NCBI GenBank assembly: GCA_000388065.2
Contig: KB932201.1
DNA: 64,000 nt
Direction: 5' to 3' (one strand)
DNA from: Fonticula alba ATCC 38817
Taxonomy: Eukaryota; Protista; Nucleariida
Both the position numbers and the translations under genes were made by a program. Shown piece by piece: positions 11,979-63,214 of the stretch (position 1 is the first letter of the stretch; each line of letters begins with the position of its first letter). The notes under the pieces were generated by a model. The model searched no databases and had not been told where the DNA came from. It was given only the letters and a program-made list of their open reading frames with translations.

Positions 11979-12468
11979 NNNNNNNNNNNNNNNNNNNNNN
12001 NNNNNNNNNNNNNNNNNNNNNNNNNNNNNNNNNNNNNNNNNNNNNNNNNNNNNNNNNNNNNNNNNNNNNNNNNNNNNNNNNNNNNNNNNNNNNNNNNNNN
12101 NNNNNNNNNNNNNNNNNNNNNNNNNNNNNNNNNNNNNNNNNNNNNNNNNNNNNNNNNNNNNNNNNNNNNNNNNNNNNNNNNNNNNNNNNNNNNNNNNNNN
12201 NNNNNNNNNNNNNNNNNNNNNNNNNNNNNNNNNNNNNNNNNNNNNNNNNNNNNNNNNNNNNNNNNNNNNNNNNNNNNNNNNNNNNNNNNNNNNNNNNNNN
12301 NNNNNNNNNNNNNNNNNNNNNNNNNNNNNNNNNNNNNNNNNNNNNNNNNNNNNNNNNNNNNNNNNNNNNNNNNNNNNNNNNNNNNNNNNNNNNNNNNNNN
12401 NNNNNNNNNNNNNNNNNNNNNNNNNNNNNNNNNNNNNNNNNNNNNNNNNNNNNNNNNNNNNNNNNNNN
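11979..12468. other. Assembly gap (one of seven; others about 18669-18871, 20160-20548, 24979-25123, 41295-41349, 48884-48994, 63722-63841)
   Basis: N runs, nearly all bordered by G or C homopolymers. Confidence 0.99.
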
Positions 12469-13138: not shown

Positions 13139-15423
13139 ATGTCCTACTCGCATAACCACCACTCGCGCGGAAGCGCCGACTACTACCCCTCCAGCGGTCA
13201 GCAGCCGCGTAGCTCCCTGCACGACCCGTACTCCGGTACCGGCGGGCATCTGCCCTATGATGACGATGCCGAGATGGGTGCCTCGCATTACGACCGCGAG
13301 CGCCAGGACCTCGAGCACCCGCCCCACCACCATCACCACCACCACCAGCAGGATGGCACGTATTACTCGGCCGAGAAGTCTCTTCTCGGTGGCGGCGAGG
13401 CTGCTCCCTCGGGCCCGGCTGGAGGCCCGGCCAACCCTGACATTGAGCCCGAGGCCAAGGGCCATCTGACCTTCCCTCTGCTGGTGTCTGTTTGTGCGTT
13501 CCCCCCTCCCCTTTTTTTTCGCCCCCCCCCCTGGCTCCTGCGCCGAAGGCTCCTTCTCCCTCTCGCCTGCCCTCCTCTCTGACCGTCCTTCCGTTTCGCC
13601 CCCCCCCCTCCCTCCCGCCGCCGCCGCCGCCGCCGCCCTCATCCACAACAGTCATTGCTGTGATTGGTGCCTTTAGCAACGGCTTCCACACCTCCGTCCT
13701 CAACACCTCGGGTGGTACCTTCCGCCATTGTGACCTGCTTGATGCGTCAAGCGCCGCCTCCAGTGTGGCCTCCAGTGCTGCCTCCAGTGTGGCCTCCAGC
13801 CTGGCCAGCTCCGCCGGTTTCGGCACCCTCGGCGAGATCCGAATCATTTTGCCAGATTGCTTCTACATGACCGATGGCATTTGGGGCACGATCATCGGCA
13901 TCTTTTCGATTGGTGGTCTGCTTGGCAGGTGCGCGCTCCCGGAAGCTTCCCCCTCCTGCGCTCCGCCCGCTCTCTCTCTCTCTCGCTCTGCGCCTTGGGG
14001 CGGTCCTCCGGCCCAGCTGGATACTTACCCTGTGTCCTGTTTGGCCCTCCTGTCGCCAGTCTCACGGCGGGTTACCTGTCCGACAAGTTCGGTCGCCGCC
14101 GCATGATGCTTTACAACACCGCCATCTCGGCCATCGGCACGGCCCTCATGGCCATCTCCTTCAATGAGCTGATGTTCGGCTTCGGGCGCTTCTTCGCCGG
14201 TTTCGGTGCCGGTGTCACCATCGTCGTGGTCCCCACTTACATTGGTGAGATGGCCCCGGTCCACCTCCGTGGTACTCTTGGTGTGATGAACCAGGTACGC
14301 CCGCGCGCCTCCCCCTGATGAGCGCGACTGCCCTCTCGGCCGCCCACATGTGCACACACTCGCGCCTGGTGCTCCCATGGACGCTGACCCTGCCCCCCCC
14401 CCCCCCCCCCCCCATCGGTGTGCGCGCGTCTAGCTGTCCATCACTTTCGGCATTCTCTTCGCCAACACCCTGTCCCTGTTCATGTCCACCCCGGAGCTCT
14501 GGCGGTGGCTCATCTCCTTCGGCATCTACATCCCCATCATCCAGGCCATGCTGCTGCCCTTCGCCCACGAGTCTCCCAAGTGGCTGTACATGAAGAAGCG
14601 CTTCCACGAGTCGCGCGAGACCATGTCCCTCATCCGTGGCATTCCCCTGTCCAACGATGAGGACCCCACTGCCATGCTCTCTGACGGCGACCTCAACGAC
14701 CTGGATCCGGACTCCCTGCCCTCCGAGCGCCCGGGCAAGGCCGCCCCCCGGCGCCGCATCACGGTCTTCGAGATTGCCAACGACAAGACCCTGTTCTTCC
14801 CGCTGCTTGTGACCGTTGTCCTGCTGGTGGCCCAGCAGTTCTCCGGCATCAACGCCATCTTCTTCTACTCGACCGGCATCTTCTCCGACGCCTTCCCCAA
14901 CAAGGCCGGCCACATTACCGTCGCCGTGTCGGCCTTCAATGTTTTCATGACGATCTTCGCCTCGTCGGTCATCGATCGCCTGGGCCGGCGTTTCCTGCTC
15001 CTGGTGTGCCATATCGGCATGATCGTCATGGGTGTCATCTTCACCGCGGCCTATGTCAGCAATGTCGACTGGCTGGAGGTCCTGTCGGTCTTCCTGTTTG
15101 TGGCCTTCTTTGCCGTGTCTCTCGGCCCGATCCCGGTTATCCTTCTGTCGGAGGTCTTCCCCACGCATGCCCTGTCGGCCGCCTCCTCGGTGGCTCTGGC
15201 CTTCAACTGGATCTCCACCTACACCATTGCCCAGACTTTCCCCCTGGTGTCGGGTGCCATCTCGGGCTACGCCTTCCTGCCCTTCGTCGTGGCCTTGGTC
15301 CTGTCTCTGATCTTCACTTGGCGCTTTGTGCCCGAGACTCGTGGCCGCCCGGTCAATGTCAACCACGCCGCCCTGCAGTCCGCCTCGTCGGCCTGGGCCG
15401 CCATTCAGGAGGGCAGCAAGTAG
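13139..15423 (+). CDS. MFS sugar porter (GLUT/SLC2A-like hexose transporter); multi-exon
   Basis: Sugar porter motifs DKFGRR, YIGEMAPVHLRG, HESPKWL, QQFSGINAIFFYS, DRLGRR, GPIP..LSEVFP and VPETRGR, with about 12 hydrophobic segments. His-rich N-terminal extension. Stop TAG at 15421-15423. Confidence 0.95.
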
Positions 15424-15820: not shown

Positions 15821-18346
15821 TCAGTTGCGCTTGTTATCCATCCTCTCCAGCGATCGGAGGTAATCGGAGTCCGTGAAAAGCGTCTCAGCCATCCGCCGAC
15901 GGTAGTAACGTGCCCGAACCAGGACACGTGGGTCCAGGTGGGCCTCCAGCCGGGCCAGTGCCTCGGGCGAGGGGGCATCCCTCGGGGTAAGCTGCTCCTG
16001 GCGCAGCTCCGCCGCCAGCGGATCCAACGACGGGCTGATATACCGACAGGAGAGGTACACAGAGCCCAGGTCGTGACCGTGGGCATGGAAGCCACGGCCA
16101 TCATCACTGGAATCCGCGGCCAACAGAGTCAGGTAATCCAAGAAGAGCGGGTCCTCGGCCTGATAGTGCGGATCTTCGGCCAAACGCGGACGAGCCGGGT
16201 CTGCCCGGGGGTGATCTTTGAGGGAGTACCGCCGACGGTCGGTTACAAAGAGGTGCGGGTCGGCATCCGGATCGGCATCCGACCGACGGACGAGCGTCTC
16301 CCCGTCGGCCCCCTCGCCGGCCGGCCGAATCATCCATCCGTCGCCGGAAAGTGAGGCAGCATAGAACGGCAGTGCCATGATCAGGGCAGCCACATTCAGC
16401 TCGCCAAAGCGCATGGTGTCCCCTCGGAGAATGGCCTGAATCAGGCGATGCAAGTGCGTCGGCGTGAGGAAGGCCTTGGCTCGACGGCCGGACCGGGTGT
16501 CCTGCAGACACGCGCGCTGATTTGTGCGCCGAGAGGACAGGCGCAGGATGGGCATCGACCCGCGACGGATCAGGTGTCCGCGCAGCGGGGCCACGGCCGA
16601 GCGACCGGACTGCTCGGGTGCCAGGCCGACAGGGAATTCCGGCATGGCTGCCGTGTTGTCTTCGGAGGTGTCGGCGGCCGGCTGCAAGCCTGGCGGCTGC
16701 GTTGCGGCAGCCTCCGCGGCCGCAGCGGCTTCGGCCTCGGCCGCGTGCTGCGCCGCGCGGAGCTGCAATGCCACAAGGGGACTCATGTGTCGGGTGGCCG
16801 CGGCTTCGAGAGCGGCCGGCGGGAGCTTCGGCTCGGCAGCCAATTCCTCAAGCGTGGGGATGGCCGGCGGCGGAGCATTGGGATCGAAGCTGCTTCCGTC
16901 TTCCCACTCGGCCTCGGAGCCGGAATCCGGCTCCTCCAGGTCCGAATGCTGGGGGGTGTCCTCCTTGGCGGGGGCCATTCCGCTGGCCGCGAGTGCGGTT
17001 GCTTGGGACATGCCCTGGCGCTGGCGGCGGAACCGCTGCCGGAGACTAGCGTCCAGCATGTTATGCAGGCCATTCGGCGTGTGGTTGATCGTTGTGCCAA
17101 AGCCAATGAACAGCAGCCGGGGGTGAACCGTGCGCTTCCAGCGCTCCAGCGGGTCGGCCAGGTGCCGGCTTCGCCAGGCGGCTGTCAGCTCCTCCGGCGT
17201 CGGGGGCACGGTCGGACTCACGGGCGGAGCCCCGGCAGCCGCCGCACGAACCCGATGCAGGCTCGTCTCCAGCAGGCGCAAGTCCGGCGAGTCGGCTCCC
17301 AGGTAGTCCAGGATTTGACGAACTCGATCCAGATGGTGGATGGCCGGTCGGCCGGTCTGTGGGCAAACTTGCGCGTCGAGACCCAACTGCACCTCTTGAC
17401 TGCTCCAGTCCAGGCCGTAGAGCGGCCGGCGGGCATAGCGCTCTGGCGACATGGCCAGGCGCTGGATCAGCAAGGGTGGCAGTGGAACCACCAGCGGAAT
17501 GTGGGACACCATTTCAATCACCACAGTGTAGCTCCAGTTCAGTTTCTGACAAAGCTCATCGTCGTTCGCGAGGTGAAGGCGCTGCATTTGCCAGGGAAAC
17601 CGGGGAAGGAGGAGGGAAGGCGGGGACGTTGTCAGGCCAGGCATCTCGCTTTGCGTGTGGCGGCCGGGGAAGCCGGGACCAAGGGATGATCGATGTGTGC
17701 GAGAGAAAGAGAAAGAGAGAGAGAAGGAGTGGCTGCTGCTTGGATGGGTGCTCGATGCCGGGAGACGCACGTTCAGGAGCATTTCCGCCAGCCGACGAAG
17801 GCGCCGCTTGATGTGGGGCTTCTTGCAGCAGCGCGCCAGGAAGAACATGTACTGCGCACAGTCAGATGCAACGGACAGGAGCTCGGGCTTCGGGGTGGGA
17901 GGATTCCCGGGATGGGAGGCGCCACGCGGCCTCGCGAGCGGGCTCCGCCGGCTGAAAACCGAGGCGAGGGCAATTTTCTCCAAAGCCTGAGGCAGCGAAG
18001 GCCGCAGAGAAATGGCTCCGACATCCACGGCGGCGACCGTGGCCGCCAACTGGGCCGAATGCTCAGCATGGTAGTTGTGGTGCGCCAAGAAGTCGGCCGG
18101 CGTGAGAGCCGGCAAGGTAGGCCGGCCCACCCGCCGACTGAAAGGGTGTGGTAGCTCCAGCGTCATTCCGGGCTGGGGATACACCCGCGTGTATCCGCGC
18201 TGTGGAGGATGGCGGCACCGCTGCTGCTGCTGCTGCTGCTGCTGATGGTGGTGATGGCTGGTGACGGTGGCGGCGGTCATTGGTGCAACACGCCAGAAGG
18301 CCGGCGGCCGGGTGCCGCAGCGGCCGAGAGCCACCATCAGAGACAT
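15821..18346 (-). CDS. Fe/Mn-SOD-fold-like protein with a mitochondrial-type presequence; probably catalytically inactive (mS42/mS43-like?)
   Basis: ATG 18346 and one 189-nt GT-AG intron (17582-17770) give about 778 aa. The N-terminus is Arg-rich and acid-free, ending QRGY. SOD N-domain-like segments are TLELPHPF...LTPADFLAHHNYH and LLSVASDCAQYMFFL. C-domain-like segments are LIQAIL...LSGDGWMI and RYY...DYLRSL. Confidence 0.6.
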   Translation of the reverse strand: MSLMVALGRCGTRPPAFWRVAPMTAATVTSHHHHQQQQQQQQRCRHPPQRGYTRVYPQPGMTLELPHPFSRRVGRPTLPALTPADFLAHHNYHAEHSAQLAATVAAVDVGAISLRPSLPQALEKIALASVFSRRSPLARPRGASHPGNPPTPKPELLSVASDCAQYMFFLARCCKKPHIKRRLRRLAEMLLNVRLPASSTHPSSSHSFSLSFSFSRTHRSSLGPGFPGRHTQSEMPGLTTSPPSLLLPRFPWQMQRLHLANDDELCQKLNWSYTVVIEMVSHIPLVVPLPPLLIQRLAMSPERYARRPLYGLDWSSQEVQLGLDAQVCPQTGRPAIHHLDRVRQILDYLGADSPDLRLLETSLHRVRAAAAGAPPVSPTVPPTPEELTAAWRSRHLADPLERWKRTVHPRLLFIGFGTTINHTPNGLHNMLDASLRQRFRRQRQGMSQATALAASGMAPAKEDTPQHSDLEEPDSGSEAEWEDGSSFDPNAPPPAIPTLEELAAEPKLPPAALEAAATRHMSPLVALQLRAAQHAAEAEAAAAAEAAATQPPGLQPAADTSEDNTAAMPEFPVGLAPEQSGRSAVAPLRGHLIRRGSMPILRLSSRRTNQRACLQDTRSGRRAKAFLTPTHLHRLIQAILRGDTMRFGELNVAALIMALPFYAASLSGDGWMIRPAGEGADGETLVRRSDADPDADPHLFVTDRRRYSLKDHPRADPARPRLAEDPHYQAEDPLFLDYLTLLAADSSDDGRGFHAHGHDLGSVYLSCRYISPSLDPLAAELRQEQLTPRDAPSPEALARLEAHLDPRVLVRARYYRRRMAETLFTDSDYLRSLERMDNKRN

Positions 18347-19077
18347 GACGGGGAAGTTCGCGGCCAGGGAGAGGGGGAAGAGGAGAAAGACAGGAAGGGG
18401 AAGAGGGGGGCGGGAGGGGGAGGGATGGGAGGAGCAAAGAGGAGAGCAAGCAAAGGGGGGGGCCGGGGGTGCACTCGCCACTGGTGGAAAGAGGGTCGCG
18501 CTGCACGCGGCTTTTGTACCGAAGGGGGATCGCCTAAAGCCCCGACCGGATCCCCACGCACGCCGGCCCCTCCCCGGACGTCGATCTCTTGCCAGGTGGG
18601 GCGGCGCAAGAGGGCCCAAGCTGCCACCGGTCGGATGGGCCTCGTGAACGCGCGGGGGGGGGGGGGGGNNNNNNNNNNNNNNNNNNNNNNNNNNNNNNNN
18701 NNNNNNNNNNNNNNNNNNNNNNNNNNNNNNNNNNNNNNNNNNNNNNNNNNNNNNNNNNNNNNNNNNNNNNNNNNNNNNNNNNNNNNNNNNNNNNNNNNNN
18801 NNNNNNNNNNNNNNNNNNNNNNNNNNNNNNNNNNNNNNNNNNNNNNNNNNNNNNNNNNNNNNNNNNNNNNNCGGAGGAGACACCGTCTTGGCAAGCGGGG
18901 GGGGGGGGGGTCCTCGTTTGTGGTATTTCAAATGTTTATTGGTTATGGACCGGGTTTTCCGCCGGTGCGCTGGGCAGGGAGCAGTGCGGGGGAGAGGCGT
19001 GCGGCACGCAGATTGGCGGGGCAGCCCCCGGGGAGGACACACACACACACACACACATACGCACACACGTACGCGAC

Positions 19078-20635
19078 CTAGCCCTTCTTGCTGGCACGCA
19101 TGGCCGACTTGACCGCCTTGCGGATGGCCCGCTCGGCGTCCTTGGTCTTGGGCTTCTGCTTGTCACGCTTCTTCTCGGCCTTCTCCTGCTTCTTCTGCTT
19201 CTTGCTCTCGGCCTTGGCAGCGGCCTTGGCAGCGGCCTTGGCAGCGGCCTTCTGCTCCTTCTTGGCCAGCTTCTTGTCAGCAGAGGAGGAGGAAGAGGAA
19301 GAGGAGGACTTCGACCGCTTGGGGGCCGGGGCCTCAGGGGCCTCGGTCTCCTGCTGGTCGTCACTCTCATCATCGGTGGAGCGGGCGCGCTTTGCCCGGG
19401 ACTCAGGAGCCGCACGACCCTCGGCCTCGGCGGCGCGCTGCTTGAAATAATCGAACATCGACACCGACTGGGTGATGGTCTTCACCCCGCCGAGGGTCTC
19501 AGAGTCCGAGTCGTCCGAGTCATCGGAATCCGACCCACCTCCCAGGCCCATTCCGCCGAAGCCCAGCCCGCTGCCGGAGTCCTCGTTGTTGGAATCCCCA
19601 TTGGCATCGCGCTTCTTGCTCTTCTTGGTCACGGACATCCGGCTGGAAGCGAAGATGGCATCCATGTCCTTCTTCTCGTAGGTGGACAGGTCCTTGCTCT
19701 GGACAAAGCGCCGGTACAGCAGGTTGCGCCGGGTCTGCGACCGAGCCGGGGCGGGCTGCTCGGACGCCGCTTCGCCCTCGGTCGAGGGGTTGGCAAAAGC
19801 GCTGTTCAGGTCAGCCAACACATCATTGAAGGCCATGGCATTCTCCAGCCAGTTGTCGCCAGTGTTACGGTCCGCGCCGATGCCTGCGCCCAGGGGCAAG
19901 CGAGAGAGGGAGAAAGGCAGGCAGTAGGAGGTAGGCAAGTCAGCATGGATGGGCAGCGAGCCGCAGGCGGGGGGGGGGGGGGGGGGGGGAAAGCATCAAC
20001 ACGTTGCGAACATACCGCGGTTATCCGTGCGCATGGTCACCTTGATGTGGGATGTGAGGCCCTGGCGCTGACGTCCAAGACCATCGCCGGTGTTCCAGCC
20101 CATGGACTTCAGCATCCGATGTCCATAACCAGTCTCATCTGTGCGCGTGCGGGGGGGGNNNNNNNNNNNNNNNNNNNNNNNNNNNNNNNNNNNNNNNNNN
20201 NNNNNNNNNNNNNNNNNNNNNNNNNNNNNNNNNNNNNNNNNNNNNNNNNNNNNNNNNNNNNNNNNNNNNNNNNNNNNNNNNNNNNNNNNNNNNNNNNNNN
20301 NNNNNNNNNNNNNNNNNNNNNNNNNNNNNNNNNNNNNNNNNNNNNNNNNNNNNNNNNNNNNNNNNNNNNNNNNNNNNNNNNNNNNNNNNNNNNNNNNNNN
20401 NNNNNNNNNNNNNNNNNNNNNNNNNNNNNNNNNNNNNNNNNNNNNNNNNNNNNNNNNNNNNNNNNNNNNNNNNNNNNNNNNNNNNNNNNNNNNNNNNNNN
20501 NNNNNNNNNNNNNNNNNNNNNNNNNNNNNNNNNNNNNNNNNNNNNNNNGGGGGGGGGTGGGGGGGGGGCGAAAAGAACGCACGCTGCTGTGGGAAGGATC
20601 GACAAGGCTAGTGCCAACGTATCTGGTCCTCGAGG
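19078..20635 (-). CDS. PINX1: PINX1/Pxr1(Gno1) G-patch protein; 5' exons partly hidden in a gap, start codon not located
   Basis: G-patch GYGHRMLKSMGWNTGDGLGRQRQGLTSHIKV, then GIGADRNTGDNWLENAMAFNDVLADLN. Conserved central motif LYRRFVQSKDLSTYEKKDMDAIF and a KKE/A-rich tail. A putative upstream exon at 20583-20635 reads SRTRYVGTSLVDPSHSS. Confidence 0.9.
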
Positions 20636-21350: not shown

Positions 21351-22460
21351 ATGTCCCATCGCAAGCTCGCCCAGCAGTCCGGTCTCGGCCGCGCCCTGCG
21401 CCGTGACCGCGGTCTGAACCGTCGCCAGGTCAATGGCGACCCGTATCTCCACAGCACCGAGATGGATGATGGCCCGAACTGGATGAAGATGCAGTCGATT
21501 ACCGACCGCGGTGTATGTGCAAACCCCCCATTGCCCGCCTGCCTCCCCGCTCTCCTTCACACTTCCCTCTGGCTCCACCTCTCCGGTCTTTCTGCTCTCT
21601 GACACACACCGACGCACACATACGCGCACGCTCATGCGTCCAGGATCTCGAGGAGTTCCTGAACGTAGCTCAGCTGGCCGACAAGGAGTTCACCGCCGAA
21701 CGCCGGAACATCACCGTCATCATGGGCGACCACCGGAACATGCTGGAGTCCAACCTTGATGACGAGGCCCTGACCCATGAGCTGGTCATCCGAAGCAAGG
21801 ATGAGCTGAGTGTTCCCCGGCGCCCGGCCTGGTCTCGGACCATGACTCGTGAGGAGCTCGACAAGATGGAGCGCGACGCCTTCCTCGAGTGGCGCCGCTC
21901 CCTGGCCAGGTGCGTGGCGTCTGTCCCCCTCCGGCCTCCTGGTTCCCGGTGTTTCCCTTCGCCCACTCACCACCTTCCCCCCTTTGCCCTGTGTTTCCCC
22001 CGACCGCCAACACAGCATCCAGGACACGGAGAAGATCCACATGACGCCCTTCGAGCGTAACATCGAGGTTTGGCGCCAGCTGTGGCGCGTGGTTGATCGT
22101 TCGTGCGTGCCCTTCGCCCTCGCCGATTTCCCCCCTCCGCCGCCCTCTGTGCCCTCCGTTCTTGCGGGCGTGTTCCACTGACCTGCCTGCCTCCCTCCCT
22201 CCCTTGGCCGGCCGATCCCCCCCAGTCACGTTCTTGTTCAGATCGTGGACGCTCGTAACCCGGAGCTCTTCCGCTGCCCGGACCTGGAGCGCTATGTCCT
22301 GGAGGTTGGCGCCTCCAAGAAAAACCTTCTGCTGGTCAACAAGTCGGATCTCCTGACCCCCGAGCAGCGGTACGCCCTGGCCCCGATCCCCCCCCCCCCC
22401 TCTGATCTTTCGGTGCCCCTCTCCCGCTTTCGGCCCTTGAGGCTAACCCACTCGCTCTCC

Positions 22461-22537
<77 letters not shown>

Positions 22538-24466
22538 TGGCCAGGGCAGCCCCCCCCCCTTGCCCCCTCCCCTTTCCGAGGCCCCCCCCCCCCCCCCCCC
22601 CCCCCCCCTCCCTTCGGCCCTCGCCCTCCCTCTCTTTCCTTCTCGCTCTCGCCTCCTGTAGCTACGCCTGGGCCGAGTACCTGGACAGCAAGGGCATCGA
22701 ATTCGTCTTCTGGAGTGCCACTGAGGCCCAGCTTTTGATCGATGCCGAGCTCGAGGCTCTGGAGCAGGCTGGCGAGGCGGACCAGCACCATGACCGGCCG
22801 ACCGTGGTCGCTCCCTCGGCGGCCGACACCGCGGCCGTGACGCAGACCCCGATCGACCCTGATACCCTGCTGAAGGAGGCCTTCGGCAAGCCGACCAACC
22901 CGGACTTGGCCTATCGGTCGCGAATTGTCTCGCGTAACGAACTTTTCGCCATGTTCCATGAGCTGGGCTCGGATGTCCTGACCTCCGGGGCCCTCGGTCC
23001 CGATGGCCGGAAGCAGCAGCTGGTTGTCGGCCTGGTTGGCTATCCCAACGTCGGTAAGTCCAGTACGACCAACGTCCTGTGCGGCAAGAAGCGCGTGGCC
23101 GTGGCCGCCACCCCTGGTAAGACCAAGCACTTCCAGGTATGTCTTCAATGAGTGCCGGCCTCCGGCCGAGCCTTTGGCACATTTTCCCTTTCCCCCTTGG
23201 CCTCGCGCTGTTGCTGCACCCGGCTAATCGTCGCCCTCCCTTCTCCTGGCGGCTGCTTCGCCCACGGCAGACCATCATCCTGAGCCCCGATCTGATGATC
23301 TGTGATTGCCCGGGTCTGGTGTTCCCCTCGTTTGCGGCCCTCCGTGAGGACCTCGTGTGCAACGGCATCCTGCCGATTGACCAGCTTCGCGAGGCCATTT
23401 CCCCGACCCAGCTCGTCTGCCAGCGTATCCCTCGGCTGTTGATTGAGTCCATTTATGGCATTGTCCTGCCGCAGCCGGCCCTTGGCGAGCCGGCCGACCG
23501 GGCGCCGACGGCCACCGAGCTGCTTGGAGCCTTCGCCATTGCTCGTGGCTTCATGCGCAAGGGCCATGGTAATGCCGACGAGATGCGCGCCGCGCGTGTC
23601 ATCCTCAAGGATTATGTGGCTGTACGTGCTGCCTTGTCCACTCCTCCCGCCTCCCTCCTCTCGCTGTCTTCCCTTCATGCTCTCTCTCGCTCTCTCTCTC
23701 GCTCTCTCTCTTCCTCGAGAAAGAGAGAGAGCGAGAGGGAGCGAGAGAGAAAAAAAACTCGCCCCCAACAACATCCCACTCACTTACACCTGCATCTCCC
23801 CCTTCCCCTCCCCTCCCACCTTCTCATGTGTATCTAGGGCAAGCTCCTGTATGCTCATCCCCCGCCCACCATTGAGGGCAAGCTCTTCAACACTGCCTCG
23901 CACCTGGCCACCATCCAGGACCTTCAGGAGCGCAAGGCGCATCTCTTCCGTCACGAGACCAAGGTTTCTTCAGATGGCCAGCAGACTGACGTCCTGGTCC
24001 GCCGGTCGGCCCGCCAGCAGGTACGTCTCGTGGCTTTCTCTCATTCCGGGAACTGGGGGCCGAGATTGGGTGTTCTTCGTTTGCCTTCCCCTTTTCCTTG
24101 GTGGTCCTTTTTACTAACCTGGCCTCCCCGGCTCCGTGATGCTCCGGTGGGGTTTTTTTTTTCTTCATCCTCTGCATTCAGCCTCAGAACAGCGTTCAGG
24201 CTGAGATCGACCGCGACTTCTTCGCCCAGTCCAATGTGGGCGTCGGCTATAAGAACAAGAACCTTTCTTCCATCAACAAGGGTGTACGTCAAGTTGCCGT
24301 CTGCCTGCCTCCTGCCTTCCTCTGCTCTGCCCTGTGCCGATCTGCTGCTGACCTCCCCCGAACCAACCACCAGCACCTCGAGGCCCAGGAGCCGGGGCTT
24401 CCCGGGAAGAAGGGCCACAAGTCCAAGAAGGTAAAGGCTCGCAACCTGTACAAGGCCACCAACTAG
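21351..24466 (+). CDS. LSG1: Large-subunit GTPase 1 (circularly permuted 60S maturation GTPase); multi-exon
   Basis: SGLGRAL, MQSIT..DLEEFL, VPRRPAW, ERDAFLEWRRSLA, TPFERNIEVWRQLWRV, VDARNP. G4 NKSD precedes G1 GYPNVGKSS; then TPGKTKHFQT and G3 DCPGLVFP. Basic tail GKKGHKSKK. Confidence 0.95.
22461..22616 (+). repeat. Poly-C tracts in an LSG1 intron
   Basis: Near-continuous C runs between the exon ending EQR and the exon starting YAWAEY. Confidence 0.85.
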
Positions 24467-25310
24467 CCAGGGTGCAGACTGTCCCCTCCCCTCCCCCCTG
24501 CCCAGTCGGCGGCGGGGCCTCTCCCTTCCGAATGCGTCTGTCCATGATTCATCCTCTCCTGGCGATGCTATCACACCTGCAGCCTTGCACACGTAGGTGC
24601 GTGTGCACGCGCGCGGTGCTCGTACCCGCCCTGATGGAGGATCGCGGCGCGGAGTGCCGCGCATCCTGTCCTTGTCTCGTTTTGCAACACACAGCATGTT
24701 GGCCCCATCTCCTCCCCCCCCCCCCCCTCCCTACCCCCATATCTTCTCCCTTCTGCCCGCTCCCTGGCCGCCAGGCACACCCATCGACTGCCGCGCCTGG
24801 CACGCTTGTGCATTCTGGATCCTGGGCATCCAAATGTAGATTAAACGCAATATGCTGTCTCCCTGTTGTCCGGTGAAAGTGTGGCCCATGTGTGTGCTGA
24901 GGGTGCAAGAGATACTTGTATTTCGTGTTTGATGAGTGTTTCGGCCCACCCTTGACTGGAAGGGGAGAGGTGGAGGGGNNNNNNNNNNNNNNNNNNNNNN
25001 NNNNNNNNNNNNNNNNNNNNNNNNNNNNNNNNNNNNNNNNNNNNNNNNNNNNNNNNNNNNNNNNNNNNNNNNNNNNNNNNNNNNNNNNNNNNNNNNNNNN
25101 NNNNNNNNNNNNNNNNNNNNNNNGGGGGGGGACAGAGGAGGGGGAGGAGGAGGGGGAGGAGGAGAAGGGACGACAAAGGAAGACAACCAAGAGAGATGCT
25201 CTCCGTGTGATGCCTCGGTCCATGTGTCCTCCCCTGGTCCTACCCCATTGAGTGACTCCGATTCTCGCGCCTCTTCATCCCGACTCCCAGTGAGGAACAG
25301 ATCTGCAGCC

Positions 25311-25928
25311 TCACCGGAGGAGGCGCGCCGTATCGCCAGCATCCTCATCGTCATCTTCATCGTCCTGGAAGGAGGAATGGTAGTCGTGGTGATTGTAGGA
25401 GGTGTTGGTGATGTCGGACGAGGAGAAGAGCGACAGCTGATTCAGGCGACCGGCCTGCGGGTTGGCGGCCGTCACAGGCACATTGGTGGCAGCAGAGCCA
25501 GCATCCTGCGCATTGGCCGAGGGCGATCTAAGCTCCTGCATCTCCACCTGGACGTCCTGTCGGGGGCTAGTGACGCGGCTTGTCCCCGTTGAGCGTGACC
25601 AAATGCTACTGGTGCCAGTTACCGAGGGTGATGTCGAAGTCGAGGCCGAAATTGTCGCCGGCTGACGGGCACCCTGCTGGCGGAAGGTCGCGGCCGAAGC
25701 AGTGCCCGAGTGACCATCCTGATCCAGGTCAAAGATTCCGTCCGACTCAACCGACGGCTGGGCCGCTGTCCCGCCGTGCTCGTTCTCCGGCCGGCGCATC
25801 ATGGTCTTCAGCTTGCCCAGAGAGTCTGCACTCGCATGAGACGGGAGGAGCGGTTGTGAAAGGATGAGAGAGAGAGATGGGATTAGCAACACGGCACGAA
25901 ATGGAAGACTTTGAAATGGAGCAGGAAT

Positions 25929-25964
<36 letters not shown>

Positions 25965-26949
25965 GGGGAGGAGCTAAACGTACGTGAGAAGAACCCAGAC
26001 ACGTTGTCAACAAACTTGTCCAGGGCATCATCTTCATCGTCATCGGAATCATACTCGTAGGTGTTACGCGAGGGCCGGGAGGCAGGCTGGGCAGGTGCAG
26101 CCGGAAGCCGATGCTCAGACACCATGGAGAGAGACGACGAGAAGTTGGGCACAGCTCCGGGCGGAAGAGGCCCCCGACCATGGGCGCCAGGGCCATGCCC
26201 CATGTGGCTGTGGCTCGCGGCAGCCAGACGCCGATATTCGTCGATTTCAATTTGTTTCTACCGATCGGGAAGGGCACATGAACAGGCGTTAGGCTCAAGG
26301 ACTGGAAGGGGAAGGGAGGGGGGAACCAGCAAGGCAGGAAGAGGCAGGGCCTGGAACAAAGCAACGCGGCATACCGAAATCTCCATGGCTCGGGGGAGGA
26401 GAGAATCATCGTCAGCGGGCCTTGCCGGCTCCTGTGCCGTGGCTGACTGCTCGGCGGCATCCTCAGCCATATCAGACGCCAGAATGGCCATCAGGGTCTG
26501 CAGTGTATCTTCATCCAGATCGGCCAGTGCCTCCTCGGTCACCATGCCGGACTGGACCAAGCGCTGGCGATCAATGGCACCAGGCGCGATGACGGCCTCG
26601 GCCGGCGCCGGCGCCGGCGCCGGAGCCGGAGCCGGAGCCGACGTCGAGCTCGGTCCATTGGAGTCACCGACCTCAACCAAGGCAGCAGGCTCGGTGCCTG
26701 AGACATCGGACTCGGTGACAGGCCCAGTGGTAGGCTCGGCAGCAGGCTCGGCGGCAGGCTCGGCAGGAGGCTCGGGCTCCGGCTCGGAGCTAAGAAGATT
26801 CTCCACGGCCTGGTCCGGGTTATTCCCATTGTGGTAGAGAGCCGTGACAATTTGCTTGATCGAGTAGTCTGGCAGCATGGTCTTCACTTCGAGGGCCGAA
26901 AGGGCACGCTGGAGTGAACATGTATGCATGCGCATGTGTGTGTGAGGAG

Positions 26950-26986
<37 letters not shown>

Positions 26987-28516
26987 GAGGTGGAGATGTA
27001 AGTCGGGCATTTGAGAAGGGAGGGCAAATGTGGACGTCTGGGATCGACAACACGACGAGGACAGGAGTGTGGAAAAAGGGAGGAACTTCCGACGAGGGAG
27101 GAGGTGTGGTAGGTAGAGCCAGGAGGGGGGGGGGGGGGGCAGACGCACGTTCAGGATGATCTCCTCACGGCTTTCGAGGAAGCCCTCTGGCAGGGCGACA
27201 GATGCCGGAGTCATCAGGCGCTGCTGCTGCGCGCCAGCGCCGGCATACTGATGCTGCAGCTGGGAATTGGCCATGTACTGCTGGTACAGCGAGGCATTGG
27301 TTGCAGTCAGCTCGTCGTTGATGGCATTGAACAGCTCAATGAAGTGCGTGAGGTCCTCCTCCAGGTCGAAGCGAATCTCCACCATGACCGTCTCGGAGTC
27401 CTCACGGAAGAGGCGCAGCGGGGCCCGATGGATGAAGGACGCGTGCGACCGAAGCCCGATGACCTGGGGGTCATCCCGATGCCGGAAGAGCTGCGAGTTC
27501 TGGGCGTCCATCAGCAGCACGACATTCGACTGGCCATCGCCCTCAGACCCGAAGGAGACAGCAGTCAGAACCAGCGGACTGGACAGCATCAGCACACACT
27601 GGAGAGGCTGGCGACGGCGGCGCCGTTGGAAGATCTCCACTTTGCAGTTCATCAGCGCCTTGTCGGTATCAACATTGGTGAGTACGCCACCATTGGAGCT
27701 CGGAGTCGGGACCGTGGGAGCGGCATGAGGCCTCGACCGGGCGGGGGCCATCCCAGGGCTGCCATATGCCGGGTAGCCACCATGGAAAGCCGGAGCCGGA
27801 GCCATGCCACTGGGATGGTAGCCACCAAATCCGGGCATCGGGTGATAGCTGGTGCTCGGGTAGCCGCCCAAGGGAGAGGCAGGCGCCATGTGGGGAGAGG
27901 TCCATGTGGGAGCCGGGGCAGTGGCTGCGGCTGCGGTTGCGGCTGCCGGTGTCGAGGGACTGGCCGCCACATCGGGCACTGAGACAGCACCGGCTGGGGT
28001 GCCAGCCGAGGCAGGTGCCACCGCCGCCGATGACTGCGGCAGCGGCTGCGGCTGGGCCTGGGGCTGGGGCTGGGGCTGGTGGCCAGAGGGAGGAGAGGAG
28101 GGTGTAGCACGAGCATCCGGCCCCGGCTGGCTGTAGGCGCCATACGCTCCAGGGCCCTGGTAGTAGGGACCGCGCGAGTCGTGGTGATGCGCCGCAGGAC
28201 CAGGCATCCGCGCCTGGCTTTGAAGATGCGGCGGGGGCTCATACGATGAGGGGGTATGTGCGATGGGCATGCTGGCGAAAGGATCGCCCGGGGCCGAGGA
28301 GCCGGTGTGCTCGGCAAACGACATGTCCGCGAAGGGATCGGTCGAGGTTAGGCCGCCACCGGTGGCCGGCGCGGATGCCCCATCGTCCGGAGAGGTGAGA
28401 GATACATCCTCCAGTCGCTCCGACAGGGGATCGAACTCGAGGAACAGATCTCGATCAAGTGACTGCGCCGGCGCCGAGGCCGGAGACGCCGGATTGGAGT
28501 TGGGCGGCAAAGACAT
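25311..28516 (-). CDS. Adaptor-like protein: FDPL/DPF motifs, PH-like domain, CUE domain, UIM; 3' end uncertain
   Basis: Introns at 26909-27148 and about 26259-26374 plus a later one. CUE-like ALEVKTMLPDYSIKQIVTALYHNGNNPDQAVENLL. UIM-like DDDSLLPRAMEISKQIE across a splice junction. A beta-rich globular segment (NCKVEIFQ...VEIRFDLEEDLTHFIELFN) is compatible with a PH-like fold. Confidence 0.7.
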
Positions 28517-29936: not shown

Positions 29937-32900
29937 CTACTCCTCACTGGCCGCGGTGATGTCCTTGTGGAGGAAGGTCCGGCGCCCGGCGGAGAAGTCC
30001 CCGGCGGTGTGCCCTGTCCCGCGCAGGAGCCAGCGCGTGGTCAGCAGCCCGCGCACGCCGACCGGGCCACGGGCGTGAATGCGCCCGGTGCTGACACCAA
30101 CCTCGGCCCCGAGGCCCATGCGATAGCCGTCGGAGAAGCGTGTCGAGGCATTATGGAAGACACAGGCCGCATCCACGCGGGCCAGGAAGTCCCGCGCGGT
30201 GGCCTGGTCCTCGGTGATGATGGCCTCCGTATGGGCACTCCCGTGGAGGCGAATGTGCTCCATGGCACTGTCCGCGTCGGCAACCACCTCCACCGTGACC
30301 GCCAGCGAGCCGTACTCGGTGGACAGATCCACGGCGTCCGGGCCGCACCCGGTGATCGGGACGCCGGACCGGTCGAAGTGCTGCCGGGCCACCGGGCCCA
30401 AATGCACCACAACGCCGGCATTCTGCAGAGCCGCGATCAGACGGCGGCCCAGGCCGGCCCGCTGCTGCTGGTCATCGCCATCGGCCCCGGCGGCCGGGCC
30501 ACAAATGCCCTGGTGCAGGAGAACCGACTCGACCGCATTGCAAGCCGAGGGATAGTGCGTCTTGGCGTCAAGGACAATGGTCTCCGCCATGGCGGGGCAG
30601 GCTGCCACATCGACGAAAATGTGGCACATCCCGGCCGCATGACCGAGAACCGGAATGCGGGTGTTCTGCTGGATGTGGCTCACCAGCTGATTGGACCCAC
30701 GAGGGATGACCAGGTCGATGTGCTGGTCCAAAGCCAACAGCCGGCTGACGCCGGTGCGAGTCTCCACCAGGCCCACCAGTCGGGCGGCCGCCGGGCCAAG
30801 AACATCACCCAGGGCCCGGGCCACCAGGCCATGCAGCAGGGCACAAGAAGCCGTCGCCTCGCGGCCGCCCTTCAGCAACAGCCCATTGCCGGAGCGGATG
30901 GCCAGCGCCGCAATTTGCGGCAGGGCATCGGGCCGAGACTCGAAGATGACCAGCAGCACACCGATCGGGACTTGGGTTTGCTCCAGCACCAGGCCCTCGC
31001 TCAGGAGCGTACGCTGAAGGACCGAATCCACCGGGTCCACATCGTTGGCCAGCTGGCGCACACCCTCGGCCAGGGTGCCAATCTTCTCCGGGGTCAGGCG
31101 CAGACGCTGGAGGTTGGCGGCCGACAGGCGCGACTGCTGGTCATCGGTCGGGTTGTTGGCGGCCGCCTGCGCCCGCGCCATGTCCAGATCGTTGGCCTGG
31201 AGGATGGCCTCCTGCTGCTCTTCCAGCAGGTCAGCCAACCGGGCCAGAACCGCCGACCGGTCAGCGGCCGACGCACAACGGACCAAGTTCGAAGCCAATC
31301 GAGCTGCCTGGGCCATGCGCTCCTCCTCTTCGGTGCTGCCGGGAGTAGTGGACCCGGGGCTCGGGGTGCCGCTGCTGCCGACCGACAGGGCCCGAGCACG
31401 GGCCTCCGCCTGAATGGCATCATGGACATCAGCCGGAGCAACCCCCAGGGCGGCCAGGTTCACCTGGCGCGGGTCGTCCGCCAGGACCAGCGTCCCGACA
31501 CGCTCGCCGGAGATGACGCGCGTGGCCACGAGGTTCGCATGGCCAGAGGCGATGACCGCCCGAACACCGCCCATCTGGGCGGCCAGCATGGCCGACTCGA
31601 GCTTGCTCTGCATGCCACCGCGACCGCGTGCCCCGGCCGCGCCGAAGGTGACCGCCACGCCGGGATGCATGACATCCAGCAGCCGGGCACCATCGCTACC
31701 GGGCGGGCCGGACCACACACCCTCGGTGTCGGTCAGCAGGAGAAGCAGATGCGCCCGCACGGCCACCGCCAGGAGCGCCGCCAGGCGATCATTATCCTGG
31801 AAGGTCTCATCGGGGTTGTGCTCCATGACGCCGGCGGCGGCGGCGGCCGCCACCGCGGCCGCCGTGTCCGACAGCGAAGCGTCCGGAGTGAGCCCCGGCG
31901 TGGGGAGCATATGCTGATGGTGGAGGTGATGATCCGGGCCATGCTGAAGGGCCGCCGTGGCGGCTGCGGCCGCCGAGCAGGGCGGGCTCGCGGCCCCGGA
32001 CCCGGCTCCCAGGAAGCCCAAATCCCCGGACGGGCTGGCCCCGGTCACTGACTCCGGCGTGTAGCCCTCACTCAGGAGCACAGCGTCATTCTCATTGATA
32101 ATGGGCACAACATTGTAGGACAGAAGCAGCTCGATCGAGTGGACCAGGCGAGTTTTGGCCGCCGCATCCCGGAAGAAGGTGCTGGTCAGGAGCATCTGCG
32201 CGGTGGTGATGTCCAGAGCCCCCAGCAGGTTGTCATAGAGTGCCATGAGGGAGGACTGTCCGGTGGCGGCGCAGGCCCGGCGGATGGCCTCCTCCTGCTG
32301 CCGGCACTTGAGGGCCTCCTCCGCGCCCGGGGTATACTGCGAGTGGAGGTGGTGGCTCGGCTGCCCGGTCAACGGATCGAGGGTCTCAGGGACGGTGGGC
32401 TCCGGACCCGGGGCCTCGGGCCCGGCATTCCCCCGGAGGTGGATATTCCGCAGGCTGGAATTCAGCAGCTGCTGGAAGCGCAGGCGCTGACGACCCAGGC
32501 CCACGGCCCCGGAAGTGACCAGGATCACCTGGTGGCCCTGTTGCTGGATGGCCGCAATCTGTTCACACAGGCTGCCAATGCGGCCGAGAGACAGGTATCC
32601 CGAGTTCTGAGTGACGACTTGGGTGCCGACCTTTGGGCAGAAACAGTTGTGGAAAGGGATGAGCAGGAGGGGAGAGGGGGGTGATGGGGGGGGGGATTAG
32701 AAGCCCGGTCCGGGAGACGGTGAGCTGTGCCTCTGCCAAAATGCCCGATGGCAGATGGGAGAGAGAGAGAGAGACAGAAGAGGCAGGAGGGGGGACCGGA
32801 TCAATCGCGCACCTTGATGACGACACGCCGGCAGTAGCGCAGTTTCGAGCGGATGGCATCGCCGATGGCTGTAAGCGCTTCGGCCGGAAGGGGGGCCAGA

Positions 32901-35576: not shown

Positions 35577-38500
35577 TCAAGTTGGCAGAAGGTTCTCCAT
35601 GGCCATCAGCTGGCGCATCATATTCCCCATGCGAGCTTCATTCTCCGATGGGGCCATGGTGGCGTCGGTTCCGGAGGAGCCGACCGAGGTGCCGCCACCC
35701 CGGCGAGAACCCCCCACGCGGCCGGCCGCCAAGGCTCCGGCCATCTGCCCAAGCTGCATGATTTGGTTGACATACTTCACACAGAAGACCAGCCAGATGG
35801 CAATGTCGTCGGCCCCGGTGCCGCGTGTGGGAGACAGGAGCCGGTGCTGCTGGGCGAAAGACCCCGCCGGGGGATTTGTCACGAACTCGCAAAGTCGCAG
35901 GCAGGAATCCGTCATGGCCGAGGAGAAGGTCTCAATCATCTGGCTGAGCCCCGGCCCGGCGGTCAACCAATTCACATCGGCATCCTCGTCCTCACTTTCA
36001 ATGTGCGGGCCGGGGAGCTGAAGCAAACGCACGGCCATGTCACCACAAGAACCGGCCAACAGTCGCGTTAGCAGGGCAAAGGTGTCGGCCCCGCCGCAGG
36101 CCTCATCCCCGGCATCGGGGCCGGCGGTGCCGGTACACAGGCCATTCCGGCCGCAGCATGCCTCGCCGTCAGATGTGGCGCTGGTGGTTGACCATCCGGA
36201 GCAACAGCCAGCCGCCTCGAGAGTGGCAGCCGGATTGTCGCGCCCGCGCAGGAGCGCCAGAGTTCCTGGACAATCAACATGCCAGCCGGCCACCGCGGTC
36301 CCGGGGCCAACCCCATCGAGCCAAGGCTTGCACACCTGGCGGATGGGGGCCAGCATGCGAAGGATCTGGTCAAAGTGCGCCATCACTCGGGCGGTGTTTC
36401 CACGCAGGGCGATGTGTCGATCGAAGAGGGCCAGCGACAGGCGCATATGTGAAATGGCGAACCCCAGCAGGTAATGGCAAACCGCAGCCGACGGGGCACC
36501 CACCAATTGGTGATACTTCTGCCCGACATCGCTGATGATGTTGGCCAAAAGCTGCAGGAGCTGTAGTTCCGGAAGCCGAGGATAGGGGGGGGAGGGCAAG
36601 TCCATCGGGAAGACGATGGGATATGCTGATGAGAACGAGGGTGACCGAGAGAAACCCCGAGAAGGGAGGCAGCAGGGTGGGGAGTGTTCAGGGGGATGGG
36701 AAATACCTCATTGCAGCGCCGCTGCAGGTGCACATCGATCTTCGGGAGACCGGGCGAAGCGAGCCGGGTAACGCCCCCCGGTGGTGGAGGAGTGGCCAGA
36801 GGGTCGAAGCCGCCGCCGCCGCCGCCGCCGCCGGAGCCGGGTGCGGGGCTGGCTATGGCGAGCTGCGCCAGGACACCAGGCCCGGCGGTCGATCCATGCA
36901 GCACGCGCGCCGCATGGCCGGCCAGCTGCTCCAGGCACCCGATGACAACGCTGTCGACACTGAGGCGTGTGAGTGACAGAGAAGAGCAAGCCACCGGGAG
37001 CTGCTTGTCGCGCCAGGCCGCGGCGGAGGTGGCCAATGCATCGCCCCAGCGCTGGATCTTGGCCGTCAACACTGTCCAGGGAATTGGGGGAGAGAGAGAG
37101 AGAGAGAGAAGAGGGGAAGGAGCGAATCGAAAGGTTAGGTGAACGGGTTGGAGAGGGCAACGGTTGTAGGGAGGCCATTTGCACGCACGAGAGGAAAGGC
37201 GCGACAGGTCGGCGCCGGGATTGGCGCTGCTGGCAGGGGCGCCACCGGAGCCGGGAGCCGTGCCAAAGGAGCCAGCCGACAGAGTGTACAGTGCGCCACT
37301 GAATCCCGCACTCTCGGTGCTGACCATGAGCGACTCCCCGCCAAGTGAGGATCCGCCAAGGATTGACTGCACGAAGGCCTGCATGTCGCTGGACACCTGG
37401 ATGAACTGCGACAGGTCGTCCAGGCGCGACTCGATCTTGGCCCAGCCAGGGACAACAGTCTGACATTTGAATTCCACCAGAGGGTGGTGTTAGTATCGGA
37501 GCCAGGACCAAGCAGGGAAAGTAATAAAAGCAGCACAGGGTCGCACTGCAAGTTCGCGCGAGCCGCCGGCAAACCAGCTGGATGCTGACTGCAAGACCAA
37601 TACCAGCTCGGAGAGGCGGGGCAGACCGACAGACGACGGGTTGAACTTCTCGTCGCGTAGAATTGTGGCCGCCGAGAAGACCTAGGATCGGTGTAGGCGC
37701 ATGTTTTCGTGTAAGTGTGTGAATGTGTGTGTATGTGAAAGAGAGAGGGCGGGGGGGGGGGGAGAGAAAGAGGTCGCGCAAGTGACCCAGAGAGCCCACG
37801 AGATGTCAAAGAGGGGGATGGAGACACGACCGAGACAACCATGGGGAGGAACACGTACATGTGAGCGCTCGGCCTGGGCCATTTCCTCGAAGGCTTCGAT
37901 GGAGATCTTCCGCCCGCGGGACTGGATCTCCACCCAATTGCGGTACTTTGCTTCGTCGCCATTATCCACCTCATCGGCATTCCTATTCAAGAGCAATGGG
38001 TCAGGGGGGAGGGGGGGGGGAGGGAAGCAGCTTCAGAGGGGAGAGAGAGAGAGAGAGAGGAATGGTGGTGGAAAGGGGCGCACCGGTTGGAAGAACGTGC
38101 CAAGCGCCGGGCCATACGTGCATTCAGACGCTGCTGCAAGCGCTTCATCATAAGCACGGAATTCTGCGAATCCAAACCCGGGGACATGGGCATCGTGACC
38201 CCGCCAAGCCCAGGGGGCGGCGGAGGCGGCGGAGGCGGAGGCGGAGGCGGCGGCGGTGGCGGCGGCGGTGGCGGTGGCGGTGGCGGCGGAGCCGGGGCAC
38301 CTGCCGCGGGAGAAGCTGGAGCAGTCAAGGCGGGGGGCTTACTGGCCATTGGCTCGAAAAGTGGAGCCGGCTGATGTGTGACCGGGCCGGCCTCTGCCCC
38401 TGGGGGCTGCCGGCAGGGGAGGGGCGAAGAAAAGTCAATCAGCATATCGGACCCGGTGGGGAAGGCACCGGATGCCATTGGAGCCGAGCTGGTCGAACTC

Positions 38501-39533
38501 GTTGAGAAGACATCCGCCAATTGCAGCAGATCGGACGAGACGCTGGGCGCCGAGCTGGCCGAGGTGATCGGATCAAAGAGACCCATTGAGGGGGACATGG
38601 GCCCGGCAGAGGGCGGGAATGCCACCGACCGGGTGTTGAGCATCGGCGAGAAGCTCAGCAGGCATTGGTCGGTCCGCGGGGCGGACGGGGCAAGGGCCGG
38701 GGCTGGGGCCGGAGCCGGGGCGGCCAGCGGGCCAGGTGGCGGGCGGCGGGCCAGACGCCGGCTGCGCGCGCGCTGGTTGATTTGGGCCATGCGCAGGCCG
38801 AGGGCCTCATCATCGAGCAGGCCCCGCGCGGCCAGATCGAGCGTCTCTTGCAGCGCGAAGTCGATGGAAAAGTCGTCCAGATCATCATCCGAGTCGTCAT
38901 CCGAGTCGGCAGGACCCATGGTCGAGATGGCCGTGCCGGTGATGGCGGCACTGCCAGCGACATCAGTGGCGATGGTGGTGCCCCTGTCAAAGGACAGCAG
39001 ACGCCGAGTGAAACCCAGCCCCGGGAGCCCATGCAGATGAAGGGAAGACCCGCCGGCGGGATCGGTGCTGCGGGAGGGGGCTCCGGAGGAGGTGGGGGCG
39101 ACGCCCAGGCCGACCGGGTGCCCGGCCGAGGGAGTTAGCCCCCCACCGACGGCCGCCAGCGAGTGTGTGATGTGCCGTGACAGGCGCGAGAGGCGTGACT
39201 GTGGCCGAGAGGAGCCGGTGCGACCGGCGGACGTTGTGTCCTGATTGCGCTGACGCTTCGCTGGTGATGCCAGGATCAGGTCATCGGTCAGGCGGTCAGG
39301 GCGGCTGGGGCTGGCGGGCAGTTGCGCGGAGCCGGTGCCGGTATTCATGCCGGTGCCTGCATTGGGCATCGGCGAGTAGTGTAGGTCCAACAGGGTGCCA
39401 GTGACCGGACCGGCAGCCTCAACATCGACAGTCTCGGCAAAGTCCCGCTTTCCAGCATTGAACAGACCTGCCAGGTGGACAGGCATATCAGAAGGCGGTC
39501 AACATGAGCACATGCCATGGGGGGAGGAGCAGG

Positions 39534-41019: not shown

Positions 41020-41098
41020 GGTTGGATGGCCGAGTGGTTAAGGCGCCAGTTTAAGGCACTGGTGGGAAACCGCGTGGGTTCGAGTCCCACTCCAATCA
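41020..41098 (+). tRNA. tRNA-Leu(AAG)
   Basis: Cloverleaf: acceptor GGTTGGA/TCCAATC plus discriminator A; D arm GCC-GAGTGGTTAA-GGC; anticodon stem CCAGT/ACTGG with loop TTAAGGC; class II variable arm; T arm GTGGG-TTCGAGT-CCCAC. Confidence 0.95.
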
Positions 41099-41106: not shown

Positions 41107-41473
41107 GATCTTTCGCTGTCCCGATCGTGGGCGTGTCCGTCTCGCCAGAATCTCTTGTTCCTTTTTTCCCCTCCCCCCCCCCCTCCGACCAGCTCCGCAG
41201 CAGTGCACACCGGCAAATGTGTGCTCGCCGAATAAGGCAATACCATCACCTTTTGCCTGGCCAGGGGGCGGATTCTTTGAGCCCCTCGCATATGNNNNNN
41301 NNNNNNNNNNNNNNNNNNNNNNNNNNNNNNNNNNNNNNNNNNNNNNNNNGGGGGGGGGGGGGGGGGCGGGGGGGGAAGGCAGTAAGGGAGAGCGCGGAAG
41401 AGGGGAAGAAGAAGTACATACACACATCTTTGCCAATGTGCTGGCGATCTAGCAAGTGGGGGAAGTGGGATAT

Positions 41474-50444: not shown

Positions 50445-50481
<37 letters not shown>

Positions 50482-63175: not shown

Positions 63176-63214
<39 letters not shown>

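Follow-up and report, generated by a model that had tools for sequence, protein, structure and literature searches.

The gene at 25311..28516 on the minus strand of contig KB932201.1 from Fonticula alba ATCC 38817 (assembly GCA_000388065.2; the window referred to throughout is the whole stretch of 64,000 nucleotides [nt] that was analysed, numbered from its first letter) is best described as encoding a lineage-restricted, mostly disordered CUE protein. The solid result is an orphan protein of 896 predicted amino acids (aa) in which a single ubiquitin-binding domain can be recognised, next to a predicted central domain that has no detectable relatives among 1.84 billion representative proteins. 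This orphan status comes as no surprise for a low-complexity protein that evolves fast and whose genome is under-sampled. As judged from its sequence, the protein probably binds ubiquitin. The leading mechanism, with a probability of roughly 0.4, would be that of a coat-linked ubiquitin-cargo adaptor, a proposal based on a pair of DPF tripeptides and one weak UIM. What is new is the arrangement of domains and motifs around a known ubiquitin-binding module, and among disordered proteins such motif-based architectures are nothing unusual.

A CUE domain in an orphan protein

The CUE domain occupies aa 457–498 (26783..26908, minus strand) and was identified by a match to Pfam PF02845 at aa 463–496, scoring 25.2 bits (E = 1.3e-5) in the whole protein and 30.6 bits (E = 2.5e-7) as a fragment, above the gathering cut-off of 21.1 bits. 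The UBA profile scored 11.9 bits on the same stretch, compared to 30.6 bits for CUE. The contact motifs of a CUE domain are present as T-M-L-P-D at the end of helix 1 (aa 466–470) and as E-N-L-L in helix 3 (aa 492–495), with the Phe of the MFP-type motif of helix 1 replaced by Leu (M-L-P). An FP-type motif at this position contacts the hydrophobic patch of ubiquitin (PMC7226360). A CUE-like domain had been proposed in the preliminary description of the locus, and both its profile score and its contact motifs (M-L-P, L-L) substantiate it. The CUE domain is the only module with profile support in a Pfam search of the whole protein, which otherwise returned only a sub-threshold match to HBS1_N. 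The closest solved sequences to the CUE region in a PDB search were the UBA1 domains of Rad23 (E = 0.0045), and the UBA/CUE three-helix family was the sole recovery both from the PDB and from the 1.84 billion representative proteins. The likeness to Rad23 UBA1 consists of a shared helix 3 (NNPxxAVExLL) and of the three-helix fold of the UBA/CUE superfamily, while the helix 1 loop is of the CUE type (M-L-P) and not of the UBA type (M-G-Y), and the UBL and XPC-binding domains of Rad23 are lacking.

Word-index searches using the full spliced protein and aa 275–497 returned no relative. An exhaustive phmmer search of the 1.84 billion representatives, for which the query was the 752-aa open reading frame (ORF) that runs through exon 1, intron 1 and exon 2, returned as its only match a synthetic 4x Rad23 UBA construct, whose alignment fell on the CUE region. 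A scan of a contig collection made up of prokaryotes was negative, and exact look-ups of the products of three ORFs of the window gave no record. Scans of metagenomes produced nothing real, with one match (L001) being spurious, as it aligned only over ‘VEVGDSNG’ and contained a stop codon. With Pfam finding only CUE and no homologue in any of these searches, the expectation that the architecture would match no named family was borne out. The missing homologues are partly a sampling effect, because the host lineage is poorly represented, as seen in the adjoining gene for a fused glutamate-5-kinase/gamma-glutamyl-phosphate reductase (P5CS), for which the best matches are only 54–59% identical.

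Gene model and splicing

The gene was modelled from ORFs, GT..AG splice junctions and codon log-odds. On the minus strand, a 752-aa ORF (28516–26258) is followed by two more open frames in other phases, and the model resolves these into four exons (28516–27149, 26908–26375, 26257–25984, and 25825–25311, the last including the stop codon) with a spliced coding sequence of 2691 nt, or 896 aa, in which the frames are joined across three GT..AG introns. Intron 1 (26909..27148, 240 nt) extends from GTGCGT to CAG and contains a run of 14 C and a (CA)n repeat; intron 2 (26258..26374, 117 nt) extends from GTATGC to TAG, with a CTAAC ~36 nt upstream of the acceptor; and intron 3 (25826..25983, 158 nt) extends from GTACGT to CAG and contains (CT)n repeats. 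All three are rich in C and T (C, 40–46%; G, 11–21%) and full of C-runs and (CA)n and (CT)n microsatellite repeats.

Using a codon log-odds table trained on the conserved part of the adjoining P5CS gene, exons 1–4 scored 0.39, 0.65, 0.25, and 0.62 bits per codon in the frames of the model, with negative values for the other exon frames and for each intron in all three of its frames. Intron 1 has an open frame, yet none of its frames is coding-like (C, 46%; G, 11%). The lowest of the four exon scores is that of exon 3, where a second frame is also open (−0.06). The Pfam alignment of the CUE domain starts six residues past the exon 2 acceptor. The four-exon model, as predicted from these features, is likely to be correct, and it is credible because only the frames linked by splice junctions have positive log-odds, those of the introns being negative. 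The preliminary description had treated the locus as a single spliced gene, and the codon statistics support this. An intron-free, trypanosomatid-like reading was rejected, as 117 and 158 nt are too little for intergenic gaps and the frames are linked by GT..AG junctions.

The extended context of the intron 1 donor, AAC|GTGCGTCT(G/C)CC (27138–27148, minus strand), is found again at 17760–17770 (minus strand), inside the long ORF 15824–19162, where it is translated as ‘..LLNVRLP..’. The recurrence could stem from a strong consensus for 5′ splice sites in the organism.

Short motifs at the N-terminus and in the disordered arms

Three N-terminal peptides had been singled out as possible coat-binding motifs, and all are present on the minus strand: LFLEFDPL (aa 24–31; 28424..28447), with a DPL at aa 29; STDPFAD (aa 58–64; 28325..28345), with the first DPF at aa 60; and PGDPFAS (aa 76–82; 28271..28291), with the second DPF at aa 78. 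Two DPF and one DPL therefore fall within 55 residues of a disordered, acidic N-terminal segment. Reading the protein by eye, both DPF tripeptides have a DPFA[DS]MxxA context in common, in an ~18-aa internal repeat, and this shared context suggests a small internal duplication at the sequence level. In composition-preserving shuffles, a test devised post hoc, the motifs were modestly enriched: the occurrence of two DP[FW] within aa 1–95 had a P of 0.002 (0.0007 for DP[FWL]), and over the whole protein the P for DP[FW] was 0.015. The AP-2 ear is not the only endocytic module with DPF tripeptides as documented ligands; the mu-homology domain of SGIP1/FCHo (PMC4731787) and the EH domain of POB1 (PMC2238750) are others.

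A regular-expression scan of the whole protein recovered a single PxPGF match (PMPGF, aa 226–230), no P[ST]AP, and two patterns (aa 27 and aa 640) that are candidates for Atg8 interaction, the first of which is the F-x-x-L pattern that LFLEFDPL also fits. The C-terminus reads DTARLLR (aa 890–896; 25314..25334, minus strand), is preceded by DDEDDDED, and fits the acidic dileucine pattern [DE]xxxL[LI] by regular expression only.

Candidate ubiquitin-binding stretches downstream of the CUE domain

Ubiquitin receptors often combine several weak binding modules (PMC7226360). Up to three had been proposed for this protein, and of these the CUE domain is confirmed, a UIM stands as a weak candidate, and a UBM is not upheld. 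The UIM-like motif DDDSLLPRAMEIS|KQIE (aa 622–638; 26246..26413, minus strand) spans intron 2 and is continuous only once that intron is removed at the predicted exon 2/3 splice. It contains the core L627-P-R-A630-M-E-I-S634 (hydrophobic-x-x-A-x-x-x-S) and is followed by DEYRRL (aa 640–645). Relative to the UIM consensus eeexΦxxAxxxSxxe (PMC1865050), the core fits, the acidic flanks (D622–624 and E638) are each one position off, and a Pro occupies position −2. A 35-aa fragment had no Pfam UIM match at E ≤ 10, a search in which the HMMER filters may lose very short weak matches. On an ad hoc position matrix of known UIMs, which gives a lead and not a test, the core was the best-scoring site of the whole protein, at 11.1 bits (shuffle P = 0.009), while the UIMs used for training scored 28–38 bits. 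Taken by itself, the core pattern is no better than chance (shuffle P = 0.67 for two or more matches). The core LPRAMEIS is thus present and visible only after splicing, as had been reported, but it lacks a profile match and its matrix score is weak.

The stretch previously called UBM-like, VTEEALADLDEDTLQTLMAIL (aa 579–599; 26480..26542, minus strand), is a candidate acidic amphipathic helix. The signature of a UBM is a Leu-Pro dipeptide between two short helices (PMC8468184). The pattern [FLIV]xxLPxx[ILV] is absent from the whole protein by regular expression, the aligned position reads L-D, and aa 571–613 have no Pfam match except for a sub-threshold DUF5795, such that the assignment as a UBM was abandoned. 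The same helix was also rejected as a second UIM, with −2.1 bits on the ad hoc UIM matrix. Farther downstream, DDALDKFVDNVSGFFS (aa 710–725; 25985..26032, minus strand) was identified by sequence as an acidic run with a candidate amphipathic helix. The amphipathic peptide of the preliminary description is present here, except that its final ‘R’ is a read-through of the intron 3 donor and the spliced residue is H.

Linker and central block

Between the N-terminal motifs and the CUE domain, a low-complexity linker rich in P, A, G, Y, and Q (aa 90–275; 27692..28249, minus strand) is predicted to be disordered from its composition and precedes a central block (aa 283–425; 27242..27670, minus strand) that is predicted to be folded from its composition and from the secondary structure of low-confidence AlphaFold models. 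The earlier claim of a P/Y/G-rich linker ahead of a compact domain agrees with the composition table, in which the central block is not of low complexity and order-promoting residues make up 30–48% of each 40-residue block in the central block, compared to 8–22% in the linker. The single-sequence AlphaFold models, covering aa 265–456 (pLDDT, 39.2; pTM, 0.34) and aa 280–430 (pLDDT, 44.5; pTM, 0.43), have five to six strands and a ~36-residue helix, and both of these low-confidence models place strands at ~aa 305–312, 367–373, and 376–384, followed by a helix at ~aa 385–421. On the basis of these models, the central block looks like a folded, beta-rich domain ending in a long helix.

The block had been called PH-like, a fold defined here as a seven-stranded beta sandwich with a C-terminal helix cap, recognised by profile or by structure comparison. 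Foldseek searches of the PDB with both low-confidence models gave best matches of E = 0.1–0.2 and TM < 0.3, with PH-like entries only in the noise. The central block matched no Pfam family at E ≤ 10, and phmmer against the PDB returned nothing relevant, so that PH-like stands as a candidate label. A C2 identity is not supported, with no Pfam C2 match even at E ≤ 10.

Comparison with known ubiquitin adaptors

The domains that define the Tollip, Eps15/Ede1, and epsin families were looked for and are absent, so the protein belongs to none of the three, though it could still work like them. Eps15 and Ede1 are also long disordered endocytic scaffolds, with DPF motifs that bind coat or pioneer proteins (Eps15) and C-terminal ubiquitin modules (UIMs in Eps15 and a UBA in Ede1), and the shared logic would be to bridge ubiquitinated cargo with AP-2/FCHo. 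Unlike these scaffolds, the present protein has no EH domain or coiled coil (Pfam) and no sequence similarity to them; compared to Eps15, it has two DPF motifs instead of ~15, the order is reversed, with the DPF motifs at the N-terminus, and the ubiquitin module is a CUE. Tollip, an endosomal and autophagy ubiquitin adaptor (PMC4482507, PMC10690474) whose C2 domain lies between a Tom1-binding segment and the CUE domain, is laid out in a similar order: a disordered N-terminal partner-binding segment, a beta-rich domain of ~120–140 aa, a linker of ~40 residues, and a CUE domain. In contrast to Tollip, the central domain here has no C2 match (E ≤ 10) and a predicted long helix at its end, which C2 lacks, and the protein is ~3x longer, with a C-terminal extension of ~400 aa and no detected homology.

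Epsin and Ent1-2 likewise combine ubiquitin-binding motifs, AP-2-binding motifs of the DPW/DPF type in a disordered tail, and a folded lipid-binding domain, whereas the present protein lacks an ENTH domain (Pfam), a clathrin box and an NPF, and its confirmed module is a CUE instead of tandem UIMs. Cue5, the yeast CUET receptor, resembles it in having a CUE and candidate Atg8-interaction motifs in a disordered protein, but the Atg8 candidates here are unfavourable matches by regular expression only, and the protein is much larger, has an extra folded domain, and has no detected homology to Cue5.

Proposed function and alternatives

In the proposed mechanism, the protein would be a largely disordered scaffold with two folded modules, the beta-rich domain ending in a long helix and the CUE domain. 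The CUE would bind the Ile44 patch of ubiquitin, possibly aided by the weak UIM-like helix ~125 residues downstream, while docking onto sorting machinery would fall to the DPF/DPL cluster at the N-terminus, together with further short motifs of the disordered arms. The AP-2 appendage, EH domains, or a mu-homology domain of the FCHo/Syp1 type are the candidate partners for this docking. The protein would thereby join ubiquitinated cargo to a coat or to an endosomal sorting step, akin to Eps15/Ede1, epsin, and Tollip. If this motif-based reading is true, a distant lineage made a ubiquitin-cargo adaptor from a different set of parts, namely DPF motifs, an unassigned fold, a CUE, and a UIM, and the protein would inform the evolution of ubiquitin-dependent sorting outside animals and fungi. 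A more far-reaching version, in which a new beta-rich membrane- or cargo-binding fold lies between AP-2/FCHo-binding DPF motifs and a CUE and UIM pair in a lineage-specific endocytic or endosomal ubiquitin receptor, as an independent invention of the Eps15/epsin/Tollip solution in a poorly sampled lineage of eukaryotes, is improbable.

Several observations weigh against a coat-linked adaptor. CUE domains also occur in ERAD (endoplasmic-reticulum-associated degradation), DNA-repair, transcription, and autophagy proteins, such that a CUE alone is not specific to trafficking. No membrane-binding domain was recognised in the protein, and the whole-protein regular-expression scan found no FxDxF, WxxF, NPF, clathrin box, or PPxY beside the DPF motifs, the enrichment of which is post hoc and reaches only P = 0.015 across the whole protein. 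The UIM-like site has no Pfam match, carries a proline in its presumed helix, and relies on a predicted splice, the introns being known from sequence alone; and with no orthologue or paralogue in any search, conservation of the short motifs cannot be shown. A rival reading is a CUE scaffold that acts outside vesicle coats, for example in the quality control of proteins, in extraction of the ERAD type, or in degradation that is nuclear or coupled to transcription, with the DPF and DPL motifs arising by chance in a disordered N-terminus that contains D, P, and F. Def1, Cue1-4, ASCC2, and AUP1 are CUE proteins of this non-coat kind. With the CUE as the sole profile-supported module, a whole-protein shuffle P that was chosen post hoc, no other endocytic motif class or lipid-binding or coat domain (Pfam), and long P/Y/G/Q-rich low-complexity stretches of the kind typical of many non-trafficking scaffolds, such a role is a genuine possibility, if an unlikely one. 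It does not account for the duplicated DPFA[DS]M context of the DPF motifs within a short acidic disordered segment, which is the usual setting of functional appendage-binding motifs, and the protein has no transmembrane segment and no nuclear or catalytic domain that would indicate a specific alternative.

A selective-autophagy receptor of the CUET type, similar to Cue5 and Tollip, would take up ubiquitinated substrates through the CUE and be tethered to the phagophore through an Atg8-interacting motif, a design of CUE plus Atg8-interaction motif that Lu et al. reportedly described in 2014. The protein has the CUE together with regular-expression matches to [DE][DEST][WFY]xx[ILV] (DEYRRL, aa 640–645) and to an acidic F-x-x-L (EFDPL, aa 27–31), but such patterns are very frequent by chance, and arginines or a proline at the x positions are unfavourable in Atg8-interaction motifs. 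DEYRRL has two arginines at these positions and EFDPL a proline. In the absence of a C2 domain and of sequence similarity to Cue5 or Tollip, this reading appears quite improbable. An error in the gene model that affects the C-terminal half would overlap with the other readings: both the UIM and the combined architecture would be artefacts were exons 3–4, or exons 1 and 2, to lie on separate transcripts, or an intron to be retained. The splice sites are predicted without homology support, the 752-aa ORF can be read straight through the open intron 1, exon 3 has the lowest coding score (0.25 compared to −0.06 in the second open frame), and the adjoining P5CS gene appears intronless over 2.7 kb. 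Such an error is nonetheless doubtful, given that the exons are coding only in GT..AG-linked frames, the introns are non-coding in every frame and rich in microsatellites and C/T, the two smaller gaps are too short for intergenic sequence, and the CUE profile starts near the exon 2 acceptor. The coat-linked ubiquitin-cargo adaptor, at the tentative level given above, is retained as the leading mechanism.

Genomic neighbourhood and composition

The window has a GC content of 57–69%, and both GC and AT skew (4-kb bins) change sign with gene orientation throughout. Pyrimidines predominate on the coding strand (C > G, T > A), whether in exons, in introns, or in upstream regions, and the third codon positions of P5CS are only 2% A. 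The P5CS gene (29940–32696, minus strand) is apparently intronless over its ~2.7 kb and has long Ala/His/Pro-rich low-complexity insertions within its conserved domains; its best matches in the databases are from green algae, an oomycete, and bacteria. A fungal origin of the DNA was rejected, as fungi are not known to have a fused P5CS; a protist or an alga is the more probable source. Lysine makes up 0.8–0.9% and arginine 5–7% of the CUE protein (0.9% lysine), the P5CS protein (29940–32633, minus strand), and an EamA-like transporter (56047–58749, minus strand), which appears to be a trait shared by several proteins of this genome. Lysine contents in the other ORFs lie between 2% and 11.5%. 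A lysine desert peculiar to the CUE protein as a ubiquitin receptor was therefore rejected, with lysine equally low in the P5CS and EamA proteins. The highest value (11.5%) belongs to a strongly coding open frame at 19081–19995 (minus strand) with a Lys/Ser/Asp-rich C-terminal half and no Pfam or PDB match, which may resemble the tail of a nucleolar protein of the PinX1/Pxr1 type.

Several long coding-like frames have no Pfam domain (15824–19162 and 37990–39498 on the minus strand; 46835–48736 and 49376–51496 on the plus strand), in keeping with a genome that has many lineage-specific proteins of low complexity. Seven runs of N interrupt the window (11979–12468, 18669–18871, 20159–20548, 24979–25123, 41295–41349, 48884–48994, and 63722–63841), and the run at 24979–25123 is flanked by G-rich, purine-rich tracts and looks like a draft-assembly gap at homopolymer or low-complexity sequence. 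Other features on the plus strand include a sugar/MFS transporter (14434–15420; Sugar_tr, E = 2.5e-63), the first part of a GTPase domain of the MMR_HSR1 type (22447–23148), and a polyprenyl synthetase fragment (62763–63188). A tRNA-Leu(AAG) at 41020–41098 (plus strand) lies at a divergent strand switch between minus-strand ORFs (~24–41 kb) and plus-strand ORFs (~44–56 kb).

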